DNA of 64,000 bases, from the IMG/VR virus record IMGVR_UViG_3300017917_001342, positions 310,001 to 374,000 of that record, one strand, 5' to 3'. Positions 2,079 through 41,464 of this stretch are shown here, in pieces. Within the stretch, counting starts at the first letter, position 1. The number at the start of each line of letters is the position of its first letter. The position numbers were made by a program, and so were the translations under genes. Under the pieces are notes generated by a model. It was not told the DNA's origin and did no database searches. It saw only the letters and a list, made by a program, of their open reading frames with translations.

Positions 2079-2416
2079 TATCTAACTAGTCCAGTCTGTC
2101 TAGCACTTGGTACTGCTAATCCAGTTGTGTTGGTGATATAGCTGTTTTTTGCGTTTTCTTCTGACAGTGTGATAGTAATCACATGCTGCATACTGATTTT
2201 GAGTTTGGCATCAGGTTGGCCGCTAAACAAGAATGTTGGCAACATTTGCAATTGATATTGCTGTGTTTGCGGATCAACACCTAGTGTAAGTACCAATGGT
2301 TTGGTAATGGTAATTGAATCACTTGTAGAATCAACTACTTTTGCAACAACTTCGTCGCCTGTGACCATTTTTATGGTACAAACGTCATCATTTTTCCATG
2401 ATCGTTCTAATAGCAT
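2078..2416 (-). CDS. hypothetical protein, possible Sm-like fold
   Basis: TIKMVTGDEVVAKV...ITITKPL pattern recalled from small T4-like phage proteins with an Sm-like fold. Confidence 0.5.
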   Translation of the reverse strand: MLLERSWKNDDVCTIKMVTGDEVVAKVVDSTSDSITITKPLVLTLGVDPQTQQYQLQMLPTFLFSGQPDAKLKISMQHVITITLSEENAKNSYITNTTGLAVPSARQTGLVR

Positions 2417-2468
2417 ATGGTTCTCCTATATTGCTTTAGTGTGCAATACTATTGGATATTATGCAAGA

Positions 2469-3404
2469 TCAAATTAATGGTTTGTCATATTCAGCAGGAA
2501 CAGGCCATGCTCTTCCTACAAACGAAACATCACTTAAACTATATTTTGAAGTAGTTACAGACTGACCTTGGTTACCACCAGTGCAGTATAAAATACCATT
2601 ATCAATATAACGTATAAATGACACATGACTAAAGCTAAACCATACAACGTCATTTCTGCGCCACGATGCTACGTCTCTTACATTCATTCTAGTACAATCC
2701 CAGCTTTGAGAATAGGCTTTAGAAGCTAGACTATTGAGATAATTTGTACCAGATGCTTTTAACACAAGACCAACAAATGCAGCACACCACGGAACTTGGT
2801 CGCCAGGCTGGCGGGCACCCGGACCAGGATATGCACGATCAAGAACATCTTTTGGATATCCTACCTGTAAAAATGCATTCATGATATTTGGATTAGATGG
2901 ATAATTTGGCGCAACTGATCCTGCTGGAGTCTGTTCTCTCCATGCACCAGATTCTGCTTCTTTCAAGCACTGATTAAGATAATTTTCGACTCGACCCCAA
3001 ACAGTGTCACCTGGTGCTAATTGTATAGGGCTTCCTAAATTTTCTGGGTTACCAACCGGGTCGTTAGGATCACCTGTTCCATTGGGAATAGCATCGCCGC
3101 CGATAGTAGAAACAGTTTGTCCTGCATAATCGCCTGCAACACTTTGAGAAACATAGGGGTTTAATGCTGCAAACTGTTGTGTTGCAGCATAATTGTCTTT
3201 TTGACTTTGATTTGGTGCATAATCATCAACTGGTGGTGCAGCTGGCATTGACAATGCACTAAGTGAGCTATTGCCAGTGACTGCTTCCTTCCATAATGCC
3301 ACAGGTACGTTATTGATAAACACGTTTGGACTGCTATAAACATCCTTGACACCTGGATCAATAACGTTTAACGCTTGCGGTACACTGCGTCTTATATATG
3401 GCAT
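2469..3404 (-). CDS. virion-associated peptidoglycan amidase (TIGR02594/NlpC-P60/CHAP-like) with a PAAR-like N-terminus
   Basis: N-term SSPNVFINNVPVA resembles PAAR; C-term VPWCAAFVG...SHVSF...GGNQ gives a Cys-His catalytic pair. Confidence 0.7.
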   Translation of the reverse strand: MPYIRRSVPQALNVIDPGVKDVYSSPNVFINNVPVALWKEAVTGNSSLSALSMPAAPPVDDYAPNQSQKDNYAATQQFAALNPYVSQSVAGDYAGQTVSTIGGDAIPNGTGDPNDPVGNPENLGSPIQLAPGDTVWGRVENYLNQCLKEAESGAWREQTPAGSVAPNYPSNPNIMNAFLQVGYPKDVLDRAYPGPGARQPGDQVPWCAAFVGLVLKASGTNYLNSLASKAYSQSWDCTRMNVRDVASWRRNDVVWFSFSHVSFIRYIDNGILYCTGGNQGQSVTTSKYSLSDVSFVGRAWPVPAEYDKPLI

Positions 3405-3423
3405 CGGCTAACTCCTACAACAA

Positions 3424-3699
3424 TTACTTATTGTTGGAATTTTGCAAATATACCACTAATTGATCATGGCCGCCTATATATTCACCGTCTAACCAAATCT
3501 GTGGTACAGTGCGAGCGTTTGGTGCTGCTTCTAGCAGTGCTTCTCTAGTGGTCCAACTTTGATTTTCATGTAGATTCCTATTGTCTGGGCCGTTTACAGC
3601 TATGATTTTTTCTTCATAGGAAATATTTCTACTACTCATTAGGTTTTTTGCCCTTATGCAATATGGGCAATTGTCTTTTGTATATATTATTGCATGCAT
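3424..3699 (-). CDS. glutaredoxin
   Basis: CPYC active site, TVPQI and YIGG motifs; adjacent to nrdAB. Confidence 0.93.
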   Translation of the reverse strand: MHAIIYTKDNCPYCIRAKNLMSSRNISYEEKIIAVNGPDNRNLHENQSWTTREALLEAAPNARTVPQIWLDGEYIGGHDQLVVYLQNSNNK

Positions 3700-3713
3700 C
3701 TGTTAAATTCCTT

Positions 3714-4403
3714 TTACTCATTATGTTTACGGTGTACAAGTGTGCCGTTTTCATCAACATCTATCCACACTGCATCAGGTGGTATTGGTAAGCCGGCGTG
3801 TTTATAGTGCCATGCCCATTTTGTTACATATGCAACAGTTGGTTCGTCGCATCGTACAATGTTAAGTCCGCATTTAAACATAGCTTTTGCAAAATGCCTA
3901 TCACTCCATAGACGCTGAGTTGGATCAACAACCCACGTGGTCATAAGGTGCATAGCTTTGCTAGTAACAAACCAACTATTAGTATCTACCATATTTTCGC
4001 CATTGCTTTCTACCCTGTCAACATACATAGGAGTACAATCTTGCGAATAAATGGTCCTTGTAGCAACTACAGCAGCGGCCTTACTGTCTTCAATAACTTT
4101 TACCATTGTGTCTATGTGATGTGGTTCGTACCAATTGTCGGCATCAAGAAACGCAACTGCATCATAGCCTCGACTAAATGCACTAAGCGCACCCAATGCT
4201 CTAGGTGTAGCGCCTGCATCATTGTGTGAATGAGGTAAAACCATGTGTTCAGCAAACCTATAAAGTGGATCCAATTGTTTTGGATGGCCGTCTGCTACCA
4301 TAATGTGTGTAACAGGATATGTTTGCGAATTGACACTAGACATGCAGCGGTTAAGCTGCATGTCTGTTTCTTTATAGTAAGGTGTAACTACTGCTATTCT
4401 CAT
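3714..4403 (-). CDS. glycosyltransferase family 2 (GT-A)
   Basis: AVVTPYY...VADG...FLDADNW (DxD). Confidence 0.85.
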   Translation of the reverse strand: MRIAVVTPYYKETDMQLNRCMSSVNSQTYPVTHIMVADGHPKQLDPLYRFAEHMVLPHSHNDAGATPRALGALSAFSRGYDAVAFLDADNWYEPHHIDTMVKVIEDSKAAAVVATRTIYSQDCTPMYVDRVESNGENMVDTNSWFVTSKAMHLMTTWVVDPTQRLWSDRHFAKAMFKCGLNIVRCDEPTVAYVTKWAWHYKHAGLPIPPDAVWIDVDENGTLVHRKHNE

Positions 4404-5530
4404 TACAAAACAAAGTCTTTAAAACTATTAGCATCGAGGTCTTGTTTGATACCACCACTTACGTAACTGGTAATTTCAGTTTCTTGCGGCGCAACCTGTA
4501 CATCAGCATTTGATATCCACTTTTGCGTCCACGGCAACGGATTGCTACCACCCTTGTATCGCTGAGGTAGTCCTACTGCGGCCATACGTTTTGCTGCAAT
4601 ATGTTCTACATACTCTGATAGTAATTGATGATTGAGTCCGATCATGCTACCACCTTTGAACAGATATTCAGCCCAACGCTTTTCCTGTTCAACTGCATCT
4701 TCGAAAAGTTTGATAGCCATAGGCTGGCATTCAATTTCAATCTTAGCGTAATCAGGATCGTCCTTTGGCAGCAGCTTGAGCAGTGTCTGTGTACTAGCTA
4801 GATGCAGATTTTCATCGCGACAGATGAATTTGATAATCTTTGCATTGCCTTCCATCTTTTTCAATTCAGCAAATGCCCAGCTACATGCAAAGCTAACATA
4901 GAAACGAACACCTTCAAGGATGTTTACACTCATCAGTGCTAGCCACAGTTTCTTCTTCATTTCGTAAAGATCAACTGTGATCGTTTTTCCATTTACAGTG
5001 TGTGTACCTTCGCCTAGCATATTGTACCAATTGATAAGTTCAATTAGTTCATCGTAGTTCTTAGAGATATCATCAGCACAGTCAACGATCTCTTGAATGT
5101 CCATCATTTCATCAAAGATTTTACTTGGATTTGCATAGACATTTCTAATGATATGAGTGTAGCTACGACTATGAATAGTTTCACTAAATGTCCAAGTTGT
5201 GATCCAATTTTCAAGTTCTGGTAGACTGCAAATTGGACCAAATGCTACACTAGGTGCCCGACCCTGCACACTGTCTAGTAGAATTTGACGCTTGAGGTTA
5301 CTGGTGAAAATATGCTGTTCGTGTTCGGTTAAATCTTTAAAGTCTTTTGCATCACGCAGAATATCAACTTCTGTTGGTAGCCAGAAGAAGCCCAGCTGAC
5401 TTTCGGTTAGTTTATCAAAAGTCTTGTACTTCATAGTATCATAGCGTTGAATAGTGACACCGCCATTGGGATCAAGAAATGCAAGGCTCTTAGTGTGGTC
5501 GGAACGGTTAGTAACGTCAAAAACGCTCAT
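4403..5530 (-). CDS. nrdB: ribonucleotide reductase class Ia beta subunit
   Basis: FW.PTEV, LLDSVQGR, ETIHSRSYTH, LEGVRFYVSF and RDENLH di-iron ligands; C-term QETEITSY. Confidence 0.97.
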   Translation of the reverse strand: MSVFDVTNRSDHTKSLAFLDPNGGVTIQRYDTMKYKTFDKLTESQLGFFWLPTEVDILRDAKDFKDLTEHEQHIFTSNLKRQILLDSVQGRAPSVAFGPICSLPELENWITTWTFSETIHSRSYTHIIRNVYANPSKIFDEMMDIQEIVDCADDISKNYDELIELINWYNMLGEGTHTVNGKTITVDLYEMKKKLWLALMSVNILEGVRFYVSFACSWAFAELKKMEGNAKIIKFICRDENLHLASTQTLLKLLPKDDPDYAKIEIECQPMAIKLFEDAVEQEKRWAEYLFKGGSMIGLNHQLLSEYVEHIAAKRMAAVGLPQRYKGGSNPLPWTQKWISNADVQVAPQETEITSYVSGGIKQDLDANSFKDFVL

Positions 5531-20830: not shown

Positions 20831-20884
20831 AACATGCTCCTTGTTTGATATTTATTGAAAATTTGAAGACAATTAACATAAAAG

Positions 20885-20910
20885 AAAAAGGGCACACAAG
20901 GTGCCCTTTT
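20885..20910 (-). terminator. rho-independent terminator
   Basis: GGGCAC-N5-GTGCCC followed by TTTTTCTTTT on the minus strand. Confidence 0.75.
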
Positions 20911-20933
20911 CCTGTAGCATAATAGCGTATCTA

Positions 20934-21781: not shown

Positions 21782-21991
21782 TTATTTAGATTTGCGGCTC
21801 TTTTTACGCTTAGTTTCGGTTGGTTGTGGAATATAGCCAAACAAACTAGGACGTCTGTTTATCGCGCTCATGGGATTTGCTACACTAGCTATACTACCTG
21901 CAGAAGTTGCACCGCCAGATGCACTTTCTATGATATCTATAATTTTTTTGTCTCTGTCGTTTGCAAATTCTTTGAGTTTCACGATAATCAT
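21782..21991 (-). CDS. small hypothetical protein
   Basis: IIESASGGATSAGSIA motif, basic tail; overlaps the upstream stop. Confidence 0.55.
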   Translation of the reverse strand: MIIVKLKEFANDRDKKIIDIIESASGGATSAGSIASVANPMSAINRRPSLFGYIPQPTETKRKKSRKSK

Positions 21992-23136
21992 TCCTTACGC
22001 ATAAAATGTGGTCTATCTACTAGTTTAATTTTAGCAGTTGGAGTATCTGCTACGTACCCTTCATGCCCTTGCTGTCCGTGCAATATTGCACCTATTGTAT
22101 TACCAACTTGTTTATCAACATTGCTACGTATATAGTCTTTAAGCTTCACTAATTGTTCTACTATTGTCCAAAGTGCATTATACCCGTGTTCATGCTGACT
22201 GATCCAGTCTAGCATATTTGCACGTTTGTTTTCTGTCAGTTTACTTTCAGGACTACTTATCCAGGTGATAAATCCGTGCTTAGCATCAGACACCCCTCGA
22301 ATTCCATGAGATGCTCTCTGTGCTAGATACTGTTTTAGTTTAGCACTTAGGTCTGACAGTTTAGCGGCACGCAGTTGATCAATATCTAAAAACGTATCTA
22401 TTTCAGACCTAGATCTAGTTATTAAAGTGTCTATTGCAGTTTTTATATTGTTTGGGACATGTACAACTTCTAGATCATGTATTTCAGGGCCCATTATGAC
22501 TAAACCTGCAATGTCTTTGAGACCCAATTTACTAACATTGCCTATTGCACGAGAATCGTCAACTGATTGATCGTCGAACTCGCTGTGTACAACAATGCCG
22601 GCAATGCTGTTGCTTATTTTGTTACCGAGCAAACTGTCAACCGGTATTGAATAGGTAATTTTGTTTGGTTTGAATACGTAGTTGCCATTGATTATTTGAG
22701 GTTTAGACGTCCAAAGTACGTCACCTTGCAGATAACCTTTGTAGTCGTCTGGTACTGCACTATCTAGTAATGGATACAATTTTGCTATGCTGTCTGCGTA
22801 TACTTCTCTACCAACTTCGTTTGGTTTACGCATAAACAGCATTTGTTGGACTTCAGCTTGGCTGCGTGGCATGCCGCCCGGTTTTTTGCTGTTAAATCCG
22901 CTCTTATCGGTCAATACCATACCAGGAGAATAATCTCTACCGAATATGATTGCAGGACTACCATCCCACTTAATGCTTACACTTCTAGGCTCTTCTGCTG
23001 CATGAATCATTGCAGCAAGTGCTTTTTTAGCACCTAAAGTCCCTTCGTCGAACACAAGATCTTCTGGATGATCAATTCGTGCTTTTGCTTCTGTTATAAA
23101 CCAACGTTGTGGTACTACAATATCTAGGTGCCGCAT
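21988..23136 (-). CDS. ATP-dependent ligase-like nucleotidyltransferase (DUF6267-like)
   Basis: IKWDGSPA (KxDG motif I), HEGYV (motif IV-like), KIKLVDR (motif V-like). Start is probably MRHLD at 23136. Confidence 0.55.
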   Translation of the reverse strand: MRHLDIVVPQRWFITEAKARIDHPEDLVFDEGTLGAKKALAAMIHAAEEPRSVSIKWDGSPAIIFGRDYSPGMVLTDKSGFNSKKPGGMPRSQAEVQQMLFMRKPNEVGREVYADSIAKLYPLLDSAVPDDYKGYLQGDVLWTSKPQIINGNYVFKPNKITYSIPVDSLLGNKISNSIAGIVVHSEFDDQSVDDSRAIGNVSKLGLKDIAGLVIMGPEIHDLEVVHVPNNIKTAIDTLITRSRSEIDTFLDIDQLRAAKLSDLSAKLKQYLAQRASHGIRGVSDAKHGFITWISSPESKLTENKRANMLDWISQHEHGYNALWTIVEQLVKLKDYIRSNVDKQVGNTIGAILHGQQGHEGYVADTPTAKIKLVDRPHFMRKE

Positions 23137-23524: not shown

Positions 23525-23971
23525 ATGGATAACATTGAATCTATTAAATCATATAAAGACTTGATCAGTCGGTTAAATGAGGCTGAAGAAGAGCCTGCTG
23601 TTACACCACCAGCAGAAGAGCCTGCTGTTACACCCCCGCCGGAAGAAGAGCCTGCTGCTGCACCAGAAGCAGATACAGTTGACCAAGAACAAGACGACAA
23701 AGAAATTGAAGATGTAATGACATCTCCAAAGTCTGAAACTAAAAAGATATCTATTGGTACACTTGCATCTGATTTAGGTCTTGAAAATCCTGACATATTC
23801 AAATCTGCATTTAGACAACTTCGCAAAGGCGAATTACCAGACGACGAAGATGAAATGCGCGAATTGGGCGATGCATTTTTTAAAATAATGACCGCAGACG
23901 CATCTACCACACAAAGAGTAATAAATCGTCTGCGATCCATTTATCGTAAATCTTCTAAACCTAACGTCTAA
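23525..23971 (+). CDS. acidic hypothetical protein with EEPAVTPP tandem repeats
   Basis: GATAAATA promoter and GAGG RBS upstream; repeated gaagagcctgctgttaca. Confidence 0.65.
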   Translation: MDNIESIKSYKDLISRLNEAEEEPAVTPPAEEPAVTPPPEEEPAAAPEADTVDQEQDDKEIEDVMTSPKSETKKISIGTLASDLGLENPDIFKSAFRQLRKGELPDDEDEMRELGDAFFKIMTADASTTQRVINRLRSIYRKSSKPNV

Positions 23972-25397
23972 TTAAACTAGTCAACGACTGCAAATTCTGC
24001 ATGTTCTTAGCTAAATCCGATGTGGGTTTAGCCGTTGCAACCTGTCGTGCTGCTGCTGGTGTATCTGTTTGATCAGCAGTGTTTTTTCTACGCAATGCAT
24101 CAAACATATCTGCACCAGCAGCACTGGCCTGTAACTGATTTTGCTGTTCTTCGTCCAAATCAAATATACGCAGTGTATTTGGATCAAATCCTAAGAATAC
24201 TTTGCTTCCAACACCACTTGAACTACGAGTTTTTAAGAACTGTATTTGATACTGACCGCGCTCTTTCATTGCTGCACTAGCAAAGATACTGATCACGTTG
24301 TCTGCTGTTTGAACTTTACTCAAACCACCTGCAATATGACTGTGGTCATGTTCTTGTTCTTGCACTGCTGATCTGTTTAACTGAGATGCTGTGATCCCAA
24401 TCATATTGCGATCTGTACAAAGCCCTCTGAACTCTTCTGTAACAAACTTGTCTTTGATATTCAAGTTACTCGGATCAATTGCTTTGTTGTTTGGATAAAG
24501 AAGATCAAGATAATCTACTATCAACACATCGCAACGTTGTTGGGTTTCAATTTCATAGTTTTTGAGATATGCTTTGAGATCATTACAGGTGCTACCCTGT
24601 GGCAATTGTCTAACATGTAGTAAACCACTTGATCGTTGTGCTTGCTTAACTTTGAGTTCAACAGTGTCTAGATTCCTAAAGATTTCTTTACTGCCAACTT
24701 CAGTAAGCATACTGTCCATACGCATACTTGTCAGACCTTCGCTAAGTTCTAATGTGATATAAACCACGTTTAGCTTTTGCTTAGCAAGGTTTATACTCAT
24801 GTTTTGCAAGAACAGACTTTTACCAACACCAGAACCTGCTGCCCATATGGTTATCTCGCCTCGATTGATACCGCCATAGAGCTTGTCGTCAACTGATTTC
24901 CAGCCAGTGGTTACCTGTCCGTTTTTGTCTTTAATTTTCAATAGACGTTCGCGCGGATTTTCAAAGTAGTTAGTACCTATATCACTTTGCAGACTTATTA
25001 AGATTGCATCTCTAACTAGTTTTTCAACTTCGCCATAGTTACCTTTGTCGATGAGTTCAGTACTTGCCAACACTGCTTCTGCCAATGCACGATTTTTACA
25101 AAATTCTTCAATTTCTTTCAAAAACGCATCTTGGTGACCGTCTGTTATATTTTCGATAAAATCAAACTCAATACCAGTTTCTGCTTTTACCTGTATAAAC
25201 TTAGGCAATACTCGATATTCATCTGCATGTTTGAGAATATACCGCATAGCAGGTCGCAGTTTATTAACAAAATACTTTGCATTTAAAATGTTGACACAGC
25301 GAGCAAATATATCCTCACTGCTCAGCAACACGCTTATAAGCAACTTTTGTTTTTCTTCACCATATTGTATCGATTCTTGTTCTTCGCGCCTTGCCAT
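23961..25397 (-). CDS. gp41: replicative DnaB-like helicase (T4 gp41-like)
   Basis: AGSGVGKS Walker A, YITLELSE, IVDYLDL, TASQLNR, KTRSS. Confidence 0.92.
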   Translation of the reverse strand: MARREEQESIQYGEEKQKLLISVLLSSEDIFARCVNILNAKYFVNKLRPAMRYILKHADEYRVLPKFIQVKAETGIEFDFIENITDGHQDAFLKEIEEFCKNRALAEAVLASTELIDKGNYGEVEKLVRDAILISLQSDIGTNYFENPRERLLKIKDKNGQVTTGWKSVDDKLYGGINRGEITIWAAGSGVGKSLFLQNMSINLAKQKLNVVYITLELSEGLTSMRMDSMLTEVGSKEIFRNLDTVELKVKQAQRSSGLLHVRQLPQGSTCNDLKAYLKNYEIETQQRCDVLIVDYLDLLYPNNKAIDPSNLNIKDKFVTEEFRGLCTDRNMIGITASQLNRSAVQEQEHDHSHIAGGLSKVQTADNVISIFASAAMKERGQYQIQFLKTRSSSGVGSKVFLGFDPNTLRIFDLDEEQQNQLQASAAGADMFDALRRKNTADQTDTPAAARQVATAKPTSDLAKNMQNLQSLTSLIRR

Positions 25398-25398
25398 C

Positions 25399-26166
25399 TT
25401 ACTTCCTTATAATATCATCTTCGACACAGTTTTCGCCAAACTGTATTTCTACCATTCTTAATTCTTCAGTACCTTCGTTGGCTAACTGATGCCAGTCGCC
25501 TGTGTGTATCCAAAGGTGTTCGTGTTCACTAAAGACACCAGCTAATTCTACATCGCTGCTGACATTCAGGGTATATACAGTTGCTTTACCGTGTGTAACG
25601 AACCAAAACTCAGACCGCTTGTCATGCTTTTGCATGCTTAGACGTTTACCCGGTTCTACCGTTAATTCTTTTAGTTTTACACTTTTACCGTCTTGATGTA
25701 GCACTCTGTAATACCCCCATTGCCTTTCTGTTTTGGCGTTTTTCCAATCTTCTAATAACCACGAGCTAGAGTTGGCTTTGTTATTACCTCCAACTGCCCA
25801 GACAAATTTTAAATCATCGTCGATCATAGACATCCGCATCTCTGGTGTGTTAGTGCTGCCTCTATCGCCGCCGTTTGCAAAAATTATAATGTCATCTGGA
25901 TATTGCATTCTAACTTTTTTAATAGCGTCACATGCAGATCCGTCACTATCATCGAATTCAATTACATCATCTACTACTTCCAAATTAGCAATTACACTTT
26001 TACGTTCTGGCATAGACATAAAAGGACGTTCTTTTTTTCTAGTAAGCCATGCATCTGAATTAAGCCCGACTATTAATTTATCACCTAGAGATTTTGCAGC
26101 AATTAGGTACGCGATGTGGCCGCTGTGTATCGGATCAAATCCGCCTGTACACAATACAATTTTCAT
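25399..26166 (-). CDS. cytidylyltransferase-like domain fused to a mannose-6-phosphate isomerase type II cupin
   Basis: TGGFDPIHSGH (HxGH), NSDAWL..KK, FANGGDR; C-term LSMQKHDKRSEFW...WHQL. Confidence 0.85.
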   Translation of the reverse strand: MKIVLCTGGFDPIHSGHIAYLIAAKSLGDKLIVGLNSDAWLTRKKERPFMSMPERKSVIANLEVVDDVIEFDDSDGSACDAIKKVRMQYPDDIIIFANGGDRGSTNTPEMRMSMIDDDLKFVWAVGGNNKANSSSWLLEDWKNAKTERQWGYYRVLHQDGKSVKLKELTVEPGKRLSMQKHDKRSEFWFVTHGKATVYTLNVSSDVELAGVFSEHEHLWIHTGDWHQLANEGTEELRMVEIQFGENCVEDDIIRK

Positions 26167-27185
26167 GATTTGAACATCCTTCTTTTGATATTGATTTGCA
26201 ATTTATTATGTGTTCTATTGTCTATTATAGTTTGCAACGTGAAAAGTTTACCGTATTTGCAAGATGCATCTGCGGCATCTTTAACATCATCTTCCCATTC
26301 TGGAAAACTAACTGCCCAGTTCTCTTCTAATGCAACATCTATGAGACCTTGATTTTTACGCTGCCTGTCTGGCAACACAATTATTTCTTTGTCTGTGCTT
26401 TTTAGCAATGATAATTGTTGTTTGTTCAATTTGCTACCTAAAGCAGCAACACCATCTATTGCAATAGCATCTAGTGGCCCTTCGACTAATATTACATATT
26501 TTCTATTTGTTTTATGAATTACATCGCTGTTAAACAAATAGCCAAGCTGGAGATCACTGTTATAATATCTAGGAGTATCAGTTGGCGGTTTGCCTGCATA
26601 GCGTGCGGTCCACCCTACAATTTTATTTTTGTAATAAAATGGAATAATAAATCGCTTGTTGAGATCCCATTTTTCGCTTGACGACCAATAATAATCCCAA
26701 CCATTGGCAATTGCCGAGCCACGCGATGCAAGATAGTTACAGCATTGAACAAACTCGTCTGTGACGTTGTCATCTTCCATAACAACTTGAAACGGCCTTG
26801 CATTTTCTGGCAATTTAACTTCTGTAAAATCTGTTATGATTTTTACATCGCTAGTAGTTACTGCTACATCAACACCATTTATTTTGTTATGCAATAATTC
26901 TAGCTTGACTCGTTTAACATCATCATCTGACACACCAAGCCATTTTAACAGATTATCAAATTTCTTGCTGATATTTTGATTGTCATAAACAGTTTTAAAA
27001 CCACAGTTATAACAATTATATGCAACATATCCGCCTTCAGCCATAAGAAGGTTGCCGCGCATTCTATTGTCTTGATTATGGCCGCGATGATGACAACAAG
27101 GTGCATTAAACATAACCCAGCCGCGTGGACTAGATTTACGTTTTTGTGGTAGATGTTCCGCTATCAACTGATGTACGAGTGCCAT
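26163..27185 (-). CDS. gp61: DNA primase (T4 gp61-like)
   Basis: Zn-binding C..H...CYNC; TOPRIM VEGPLDA...DRQ...KDAAD. Confidence 0.9.
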   Translation of the reverse strand: MALVHQLIAEHLPQKRKSSPRGWVMFNAPCCHHRGHNQDNRMRGNLLMAEGGYVAYNCYNCGFKTVYDNQNISKKFDNLLKWLGVSDDDVKRVKLELLHNKINGVDVAVTTSDVKIITDFTEVKLPENARPFQVVMEDDNVTDEFVQCCNYLASRGSAIANGWDYYWSSSEKWDLNKRFIIPFYYKNKIVGWTARYAGKPPTDTPRYYNSDLQLGYLFNSDVIHKTNRKYVILVEGPLDAIAIDGVAALGSKLNKQQLSLLKSTDKEIIVLPDRQRKNQGLIDVALEENWAVSFPEWEDDVKDAADASCKYGKLFTLQTIIDNRTHNKLQINIKRRMFKS

Positions 27186-39492: not shown

Positions 39493-40530
39493 TTAGTTGC
39501 CCATCTTACGGCGACGGATTGCTTCAAGAATGTCTTCAGGTGTAGACATCTTTGGCTTATCGCCTGCTGGTGCCGCAGGTGTTTCTGTTTGCGGCTTAGG
39601 GTCAACCCAACCAGTATCATGTGTAGTTTCTGCAGATTTTGCAGATGCACGTTCTAGTATGCTACTAGCTGTAACAGGTTTAGTAACTGGTGCTACTGCT
39701 GGTGCAACATCAGCATCACCGCCATCTGAACGCATACCGTTTGGCTTGTAGAATTGTCCCCAACGTTCAGTGTCATAGAGTTCTTCATTAACACTTGCAT
39801 GGAACAGTTCAACGATTGCGTTGAGATGATCATCATCTGGCTTCTTTGGCAAGAATTGACTTAGATTGTACAATCCAAACTTTTCAATGCTTTCCATTTC
39901 ACCATCGTTAAGCGGACGTTCTTTCATAGACCAACTAGAGCTAGCATAGTTAGCATAACCTCCCTTACTGGTTTTAGTGAGGTAGAAGTCACGCCCATTT
40001 GCATAGTCAGTAGGACTATTCTCGAGGTCCTGTCGCATAAGAATGCCTTTAACCACGTCAAACACACTTGGGTTAATGATAAACCTGCGGATTGGATTTT
40101 CCGGTGTGTTGTCATCCTTGTTTGGATTTTGTGTAACAAAGCCCTGGAACAGATAGCTCTTTTTACGCCAGTATTTACGAGCCATGTCTTCCAATGACGG
40201 ATCTTTCCACCATGAACGTGTTTCTGCTGCGATAGGACAGGTACCAGGTTTCCACATATCCATGCAAGGAACTTGCACTTCAACTGGCCTAGCGTCATTT
40301 TGACCTTTAACACCTGGGAATGGAATTTTGATAATCAGTCGTTCTACCCAGAAAAAGTCATTGGTATCATCACCGTCTGGGAGAAATCTTAGAGTTGCAG
40401 TGCTGCCTTCTGGGTTGTTCCAGAACGGATAAATGCTATTGTCGCTTGTAAAGTTTCCACCGCGACCACGTTCTTTACGTGCTTGTTGCTCTAAGAGTTT
40501 AGCTTGTATTTCTTTAAGATTAAGTGCCAT
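39493..40530 (-). CDS. gp32: single-stranded DNA-binding protein (T4 gp32-like)
   Basis: LRFLPDGD, C...G.CP, YANYASSSW; CATAAATA and GGAGG upstream. Confidence 0.85.
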   Translation of the reverse strand: MALNLKEIQAKLLEQQARKERGRGGNFTSDNSIYPFWNNPEGSTATLRFLPDGDDTNDFFWVERLIIKIPFPGVKGQNDARPVEVQVPCMDMWKPGTCPIAAETRSWWKDPSLEDMARKYWRKKSYLFQGFVTQNPNKDDNTPENPIRRFIINPSVFDVVKGILMRQDLENSPTDYANGRDFYLTKTSKGGYANYASSSWSMKERPLNDGEMESIEKFGLYNLSQFLPKKPDDDHLNAIVELFHASVNEELYDTERWGQFYKPNGMRSDGGDADVAPAVAPVTKPVTASSILERASAKSAETTHDTGWVDPKPQTETPAAPAGDKPKMSTPEDILEAIRRRKMGN

Positions 40531-40642
40531 GATATGTGCCTCCTATATGTGTTTTTTTCATGTGCCTAAATGTGTATTAAGACAACATACAAAGATCGCT
40601 GTATGCTGACAGTGTTATTTATGCCACAGATATCATCAAAAG

Positions 40643-41464
40643 TCAAAATAATAATTGATAATCTCTAGGATCAATGTTAAATTCACCGCAGGCATGTATC
40701 TTTGATACGTTGTCTAGCTTCGACCACTCAGTGTAACCTATGTATTGAGGTCTTACAAGAGTCGCCGATATAAATCTTTTGGTTGCATCTATTACCACAG
40801 AATGTCGCATGCAGTAGGATGCTAACAATGCACAGGGGTTCGGATGAATTAATTGGTTTGGTAAGTCAGCCCACTGACTTTCAAGATATCGCAACATCAA
40901 CAGGCCTGCTGCACTTCTGCCTGCAACATAACAAAGATCGTCTGCTAATTCGATGTCAGATTGGTCAACTGTAACAGATTCTGCAACAGTGTTTAGAGTA
41001 GCAACAACTTCCATAGTACCTGCAATTTTTGTAGACGTTGCAGTTTGAAAAAAACCATATTTGCAGTCTGGTCTGGCAAATACAATTTGCTCATATCGTG
41101 TACCTGACAGTATTTCTTGTTTTCTTAACTCTATGCCAAGTTGGTAATCTAGCCAGGCTAATTTCCAATAATCTGGTGCATATCCGTCCCAGCTCTGTCT
41201 ATGTGTATAAGGACATTTGTAATTTTCTTCATTTACAAATTTGCAGGATATTAGATTACTTTTGTAAAAATCTCTATGTAGACTATCGATCGTAACCGTA
41301 TCAGACTTGGGGAAACACATATACCAATCGATGTTATCGTAGCAGTTGTTTAAGAAAGCTAAATTTTGATATTTTACAAGATTCCATGTGCGTACATGTC
41401 CACGCAAAAATATTGCAGTTTTCATTGCAATGCACCAACTTTTAATTTGATGCGATTTGCCCAA
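40643..41464 (-). CDS. hypothetical protein, possible GT-A-like glycosyltransferase
   Basis: FLRGHVRTW...IVFARPD pattern; weak. Confidence 0.45.
   Translation of the reverse strand: MGKSHQIKSWCIAMKTAIFLRGHVRTWNLVKYQNLAFLNNCYDNIDWYMCFPKSDTVTIDSLHRDFYKSNLISCKFVNEENYKCPYTHRQSWDGYAPDYWKLAWLDYQLGIELRKQEILSGTRYEQIVFARPDCKYGFFQTATSTKIAGTMEVVATLNTVAESVTVDQSDIELADDLCYVAGRSAAGLLMLRYLESQWADLPNQLIHPNPCALLASYCMRHSVVIDATKRFISATLVRPQYIGYTEWSKLDNVSKIHACGEFNIDPRDYQLLF

Follow-up and report, generated by a model that had tools for sequence, protein, structure and literature searches.

A divergent ligase-like phage protein family (DUF6267) in a 519-kb phage and in T4-like cyanophages

A minus-strand gene of a 519-kb phage carries three short motifs, KWDG, EGYV and KLV, in the order expected for motifs I, IV and V of RNA/DNA ligases and capping enzymes, which raised the question of whether it encodes a covalent nucleotidyltransferase and, if so, on which substrate it would act. 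The gene was examined in a window of 64,000 nucleotides (positions 310,001 to 374,000 of IMG/VR record IMGVR_UViG_3300017917_001342), and the full record, referred to as G000:C1, is 518,643 bp in length with terminal repeats and a gp23-type capsid gene. A sequence-only reading had noted the three motifs and the lack of an evident OB or adjacent DNA-ligase domain, and proposed an RNA ligase-like repair or capping enzyme, possibly packaged in the virion given its leader. The motif observation was confirmed, while the interpretation was supported only in part, as described below.

Conservation of the motifs in DUF6267

The open reading frame encodes 382 residues. A TTG-extended frame runs to 23175, although the ATG at 23136 is the start shared by homologues (MRH...). 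The whole protein was placed in the Pfam family DUF6267 (PF19782) with a score of 124.2 bits against a gathering cut-off of 27 (E 1.1e-35), where residues 21-380 matched profile positions 4-369 of 376. A PHROGs search gave an unannotated family, an NCBIfam search gave nothing meaningful, and no paper in the literature library searched mentions DUF6267. A word-index search found 838 relatives, all of them DUF6267, and an exhaustive profile search found 2,136 representative clusters at E<=0.001. Among cultured phages the window protein found 95 records, while a cyanophage member found 467, almost all T4-like cyanophages, plus pelagiphage HTVC008M, Methylophilales phage Melnitz, Stenotrophomonas phage DLP6 and a few others, all annotated as hypothetical. 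The gene corresponds to gp183 of Syn9 and of S-RIM8, and P-TIM40 gp182 is another cultured-phage orthologue. In S-PM2 (NC_006820.1, 103025-104804) it is split, with the N half in S-PM2p141 and the C half continuing into the start of S-PM2p142, annotated 'cytidyltransferase', which is either a frameshift or a natural fusion.

Three short motifs in a single sequence could be chance, but their conservation is not. In an alignment of 246 full-length domains with a median pairwise identity of 34%, only seven of 382 columns were 100% invariant (K56, D58, G59, Y162, E359, G360 and R375), and five of these belong to motifs I and IV. Residues conserved at 97% or more were H23, E25, D26, D77, D139 (D or E), H184, K333 and K371. 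The first Lys of KIKLV (K369) was not conserved, so that motif V has a single conserved Lys plus an Arg. The conserved core is therefore motif I (KxDG), an acidic residue in a GD strand at the motif III position, an aromatic residue in the next hairpin at the IIIa position, motif IV (EG) and the motif V lysine, where motifs III and IIIa were assigned by position only. It is very unlikely that the protein is non-catalytic or structural, possibly virion-borne, and merely retains a ligase-like shape, as the invariant residues are exactly the catalytic ones.

Table 1. Coordinates of the DUF6267 gene, its motifs and the features around it (window positions unless G000:C1 is given)
Feature	Position	Strand	Observations
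DUF6267 CDS, 382 aa plus stop	21988-23136	-	Full-length PF19782 protein
N-terminal H23-P-E25-D26 (HxED) motif	23059-23070	-	Family-specific, nearly invariant; H23 in 245/246, E25 in 244/246, D26 in 245/246; just before the long helix (24-48) that leads into motif I; role in leaving-group or metal contact inferred
Motif I, K56-W-D58-G59	22960-22971	-	K, D and G in 246/246; between strands 53-55 and 62-67 of the model; K56 is the predicted nucleotidyl-accepting lysine; paired weakly by hhalign with motif I of the phage's own PF09414 ligase (E 0.027)
D139 in strand YLQGDVLW, motif III equivalent	22720-22722	-	D in 240 and E in 5 of 246; strand 134-142; expected to contact the ribose; assignment inferred from motif order and strand position
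Y162, motif IIIa-like aromatic	22651-22653	-	246/246; hairpin of strands 152-155 and 160-165; expected to stack on the base; role inferred
H184	22585-22587	-	245/246; strand 177-187; role unknown
All-helical module, residues 229-344	22105-22452	-	Inserted between motifs IIIa and IV; pLDDT above 90; conserved K268 and K333 (K333 in at least 97%); shortened but not lost in the 298-aa cyanophage form; candidate nucleic-acid-binding domain that replaces an OB domain, function inferred
Motif IV, E359-G360-Y-V362	22051-22062	-	E and G in 246/246; paired weakly by hhalign with motif IV of the phage's own Rnl1-type and HNH-fused RNA ligases (E 0.26 and 0.012)
Motif V region, K371-L-V373 plus R375	22012-22026 (KLV 22018-22026)	-	K371 in 245/246, R375 in 246/246, K369 variable; strand pair 361-364/369-372 forms the usual IV-V hairpin
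DnaB/gp41-type replicative helicase	23961-25397	-	PF03796 and PHROG 19; upstream of DUF6267
DNA primase	26163-27185	-	PHROG 47
Cytidylyltransferase-cupin gene, 255 aa	25399-26166	-	RfaE-domain-II-like (heptose-1-phosphate) adenylyltransferase fused to a mannose-6-phosphate-isomerase-type cupin
Acidic, Pro/Glu-rich ORF, 148 aa	23525-23971	+	Opposite strand to all its neighbours; probably real
Small upstream protein, 86 aa	23199-23459	-	PHROG 11854 ('virion structural protein')
Protein ending in CGCG...SF, 105 aa	18746-19063	-	Counterpart in relative L010 carries PF01521 (Fe-S cluster biosynthesis, IscA/HesB type)
Terminator-like hairpin	20883-20913	-	Strong, 13 pairs followed by a T run, after the 261-aa gene; probably ends the transcription unit that contains the DUF6267 gene
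PolX-like gene	G000:C1:403380-404126		Separate gene, about 70 kb from DUF6267
PolyA_pol-head (tRNA nucleotidyltransferase-like) gene and three glycosyltransferase genes	G000:C1:398617-403383 (618-1448 and 2312-5384 of the extracted locus L020)		Just upstream of the PolX-like gene; a gp23-type major capsid gene lies just downstream of it
Rnl1-type RNA ligase, two PF09414 RNA ligases (one fused to an HNH-like N terminus) and a canonical ATP-dependent DNA ligase	G000:C1:68611-69192, 40389-40859, 271836-272294, 73720-74310		Outside the window; five ligase-type genes with DUF6267

Predicted fold and comparison with known ligases

An AlphaFold model built on 38 sequences was confident (pLDDT 89.6, pTM 0.83) and placed the conserved residues on beta-strands in the canonical order, with a six-to-seven-helix module of 116 residues between the IIIa region and motif IV. 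Only nine residues remain after KLV, where the model ends, and no OB fold was seen, so the C-terminal OB domain with motif VI of ATP-dependent DNA ligases and mRNA capping enzymes is not present. A structural comparison with RNA ligases and capping enzymes had been suggested in advance as a way to examine the sequence-only reading, and the predicted fold was of the nucleotidyltransferase type. The structure searches agreed with one another. The best Foldseek hit in the PDB was T4 Rnl1 (E 0.03) with many other ligases among the weak hits, and after re-alignment of the top 1000 Foldseek entries, 47 of the best 50 were RNA or DNA ligases, each matched over its nucleotidyltransferase domain with 160-190 residues aligned. 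Formation of a covalent lysyl-NMP intermediate, which had likewise been named as a criterion, was not assayed here.

Sequence methods did not confirm the link, and no statistically significant similarity to a known member of the superfamily was found. Searches of PDB sequences with either the single sequence or the family profile gave no ligase hit. The ligase Pfam models (PF09511, PF09414 and PF01068) found four other genes in this phage but did not hit this one at E<=1, and there was no Pfam or NCBIfam match to the PF01653 adenylation domain with domain Ia of the NAD+-dependent ligase LigA. The family was compared by hhalign with the Rnl1-type, the two PF09414-type and the ATP DNA ligase genes of the phage, and the 246-sequence profile was compared with a 120-sequence Rnl1 alignment, which was shallow with all members at least 60% identical. 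Only weak local matches were returned, none significant (probability below 4%), although these placed motif I on motif I and motif IV on motif IV. We therefore regard DUF6267 as a new, very divergent family of the superfamily and not a member of any named ligase family.

The nick-sealing RNA ligases Naegleria NgrRnl (Rnl5), T4 Rnl2 and Trypanosoma REL1 showed no detectable sequence or profile similarity to DUF6267, which has its accessory helical module inserted inside the catalytic domain rather than appended at the N or C terminus, an extra invariant or nearly invariant HxED motif, and one conserved Lys plus an Arg in motif V. In T4 RNA ligase 1 (Rnl1, PF09511) the helical tRNA-binding domain follows motif V, while the helical module of DUF6267 precedes motif IV, and the hhalign probability was below 1%. 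Relative to the ATP-dependent DNA ligases (T4 gp30, Chlorella virus, ASFV ligase and LigI/III/IV), DUF6267 has no OB domain, no motif VI and no PF01068 signal.

Genomic context, fusions and distribution

The gene lies in the helicase/primase module, on the same strand as and downstream of the primase, the cytidylyltransferase-cupin gene and the DnaB/gp41-type helicase, with the small PHROG 11854 gene just upstream. The order of helicase, then a few small or variable genes, then DUF6267 recurred in metagenomic relatives, in cyanophages P-TIM40, MED4-213, S-PRM1, S-SZBM1, S-CRM01, S-PM2, S-RIM8 and Syn9, and in HTVC008M and Melnitz. In most of these cyanophages the next gene is a 'cytidyltransferase'. 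An opposite-strand gene of the same size as the 148-aa ORF sits between the helicase and the small upstream gene in relatives L010 and L012. An 83-aa counterpart of the 86-aa protein is conserved a gene or two upstream of DUF6267 in metagenomic relatives, although no similarity was found to gp180, the small gene at the same place in P-TIM40. The variable gene just upstream of DUF6267 in relatives (260-613 aa) was considered as a conserved partner and rejected, as these proteins are unrelated to one another and mostly low-complexity, although two types occur as N-terminal extensions of DUF6267 proteins. A promoter and terminator scan gave counts at background, with the hairpin listed in Table 1 the only notable site. 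Neither the infection timing of Syn9 gp183 nor read mapping was examined.

Of the 150 best representatives, 47 carried a domain of roughly 230 aa, usually N-terminal to DUF6267, that had no Pfam, PHROG or NCBIfam match. Its sequence showed a G..G...SGDxD signature plus a third conserved Asp, and it folds as a minimal family-X DNA polymerase, with a palm bearing three catalytic Asp plus a thumb. A complex prediction of DUF6267 with the stand-alone PolX-like protein returned a score of 0.00, which is not evidence either way. A second partner was a PF01467 adenylyltransferase domain directly after DUF6267, homologous to the cyanophage 'cytidyltransferase' neighbour (phmmer E down to 1e-48), whose best matches were NMN/NaMN adenylyltransferases, though weak and below cut-off. 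Nine of ten long PolX-like fusions checked contained it, giving a PolX-like/DUF6267/NMNAT-like triple architecture. The cytidylyltransferase-cupin gene of the window was considered as the DUF6267-linked adenylyltransferase and rejected, as it is of a different subfamily from the NMNAT-like type, and the phage genome has no NMNAT-like copy. Rarer partners were an Acb1/2H-phosphoesterase domain (4 of 64 multidomain members) and Cu/Zn superoxide dismutase (a 65-member cluster).

DUF6267 is near-universal in T4-like cyanophages, which have no recognisable DNA ligase. Five Kyanoviridae-type genomes that carry DUF6267 had no hit at E<=1 to the ATP-ligase (PF01068), NAD-ligase (PF01653), Rnl2-type (PF09414) or Rnl1-type (PF09511) models. 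Reviews state that cyanomyoviruses have no g30 (DNA ligase) or rnh homologue and that either distant homologues remain unidentified or host enzymes substitute (PMC2984593, PMC1079782), and gp30 is listed among 'non-cyanophage core' proteins (PMC5349666). Against a simple substitution, the 519-kb phage has a canonical ATP DNA ligase and three RNA ligases as well, and DLP6 has both gp30 and DUF6267.

Virion packaging was not supported. The NMNAT-like neighbour is repeatedly reported in cyanophage virion proteomes (PMC10665884), but in S-SZBM1, the one proteome examined, the products of genes 140 and 139 were detected while gene 141 (DUF6267) was not listed. The N-terminal 18 residues of the window protein were variable and unstructured rather than a recognisable leader.

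Proposed function and significance

The explanation favoured here, with moderate confidence, is that the gene encodes a very divergent lysine-adenylating, nick-sealing ligase that probably acts on DNA. In this view K56 would attack the alpha-phosphate of ATP (or NAD+) to form enzyme-AMP, the AMP would pass to a 5'-phosphate end and the 3'-OH would attack to seal the break, while E359, K371/R375, D139 and Y162 would hold the metal, phosphate, ribose and base. The inserted helical module would take the place of an OB domain in gripping the nucleic acid, and the HxED motif would be a family-specific addition to the nucleotide site. The likeliest substrate would be nicked DNA, either Okazaki-fragment joints or repair gaps, and in many relatives the gaps would be filled by the PolX-like polymerase fused to the same protein. 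The analysis itself demonstrates the motif conservation, the predicted fold class, the fusions and the synteny, whereas the adenylation chemistry, the cofactor, the substrate and the role of the helical module are inferred. The ligase-superfamily reading is well supported by conservation and predicted structure but is unproven biochemically.

The preference for DNA rests on the PolX fusion, the replication-module position and the missing ligase in cyanophages, and has a precedent in PgVPolX of Phaeocystis globosa virus, in which a minimal PolX at the N terminus and a ligase module at the C terminus of one polypeptide have been shown to carry out gap filling and sealing in base excision repair (PMC5537341). 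The ligase module of PgVPolX is a recognisable NAD+-dependent LigA homologue, while here the module is DUF6267, often followed by an NMNAT-like domain, and in the 519-kb phage the polymerase and DUF6267 are separate genes. Bacterial LigD also joins a ligase to a gap-filling polymerase and an end-healing module (phosphoesterase), but uses a primase-type (AEP) polymerase and a canonical ligase with an OB domain.

An RNA ligase for RNA or tRNA repair, sealing breaks made by host anticodon nucleases or other RNases, is not excluded and remains a serious though less likely rival, because the nearest structures are RNA ligases and the protein has no OB domain. Against it, the dominant fusion partner is a PolX-like DNA polymerase, the gene keeps to the DNA replication module, this phage already has three RNA ligases, and cyanophages lack the pseT end-healing kinase/phosphatase (PMC1079782). 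It is doubtful that the enzyme transfers nucleotides without joining polynucleotides, whether working with the NMNAT-like partner in NAD+/nucleotide metabolism or counter-defence or AMPylating another substrate. The tight linkage and fusion to the NMNAT-like domain, the discussion of that partner as an NAD+ modulator (PMC10665884) and the fusions to Cu/Zn SOD and Acb1-like domains would fit such a role, but the PolX fusion and the replication-module position are hard to explain this way, and apart from the mRNA capping enzymes, all characterised members of this fold with the KxDG lysine join polynucleotide ends.

NAD+ use is suggested only indirectly, by the NMNAT-like partner. A speculative and unlikely extension, though not ruled out, is that DUF6267 is an NAD+-using DNA ligase that forms, with the PolX-like and NMNAT-like domains, a self-contained gap-fill, seal and cofactor-regeneration module in which the NMNAT-like domain would remake NAD+ from the NMN released at each ligation. 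On this reading it would be the long-missing replicative and repair ligase of T4-like cyanophages, pelagiphages and related megaphages.

T4-like cyanophages and their relatives, which are among the most abundant viruses in the ocean, have been reported for about 20 years to lack a DNA ligase (gp30), and the usual assumption is that they borrow the host enzyme or carry an unrecognised homologue. DUF6267 is an uncharacterised, very large and ecologically prominent family that carries an intact ligase catalytic constellation and may be the missing nick-sealing enzyme of these phages. If active, it would define a new ligase family with a different domain plan, with no OB domain, an internal helical module and natural PolX and NMNAT fusions, which matters for ligase evolution, phage DNA repair biology and enzyme tool development, and it would assign a function to more than 2,000 protein clusters now labelled DUF or hypothetical.
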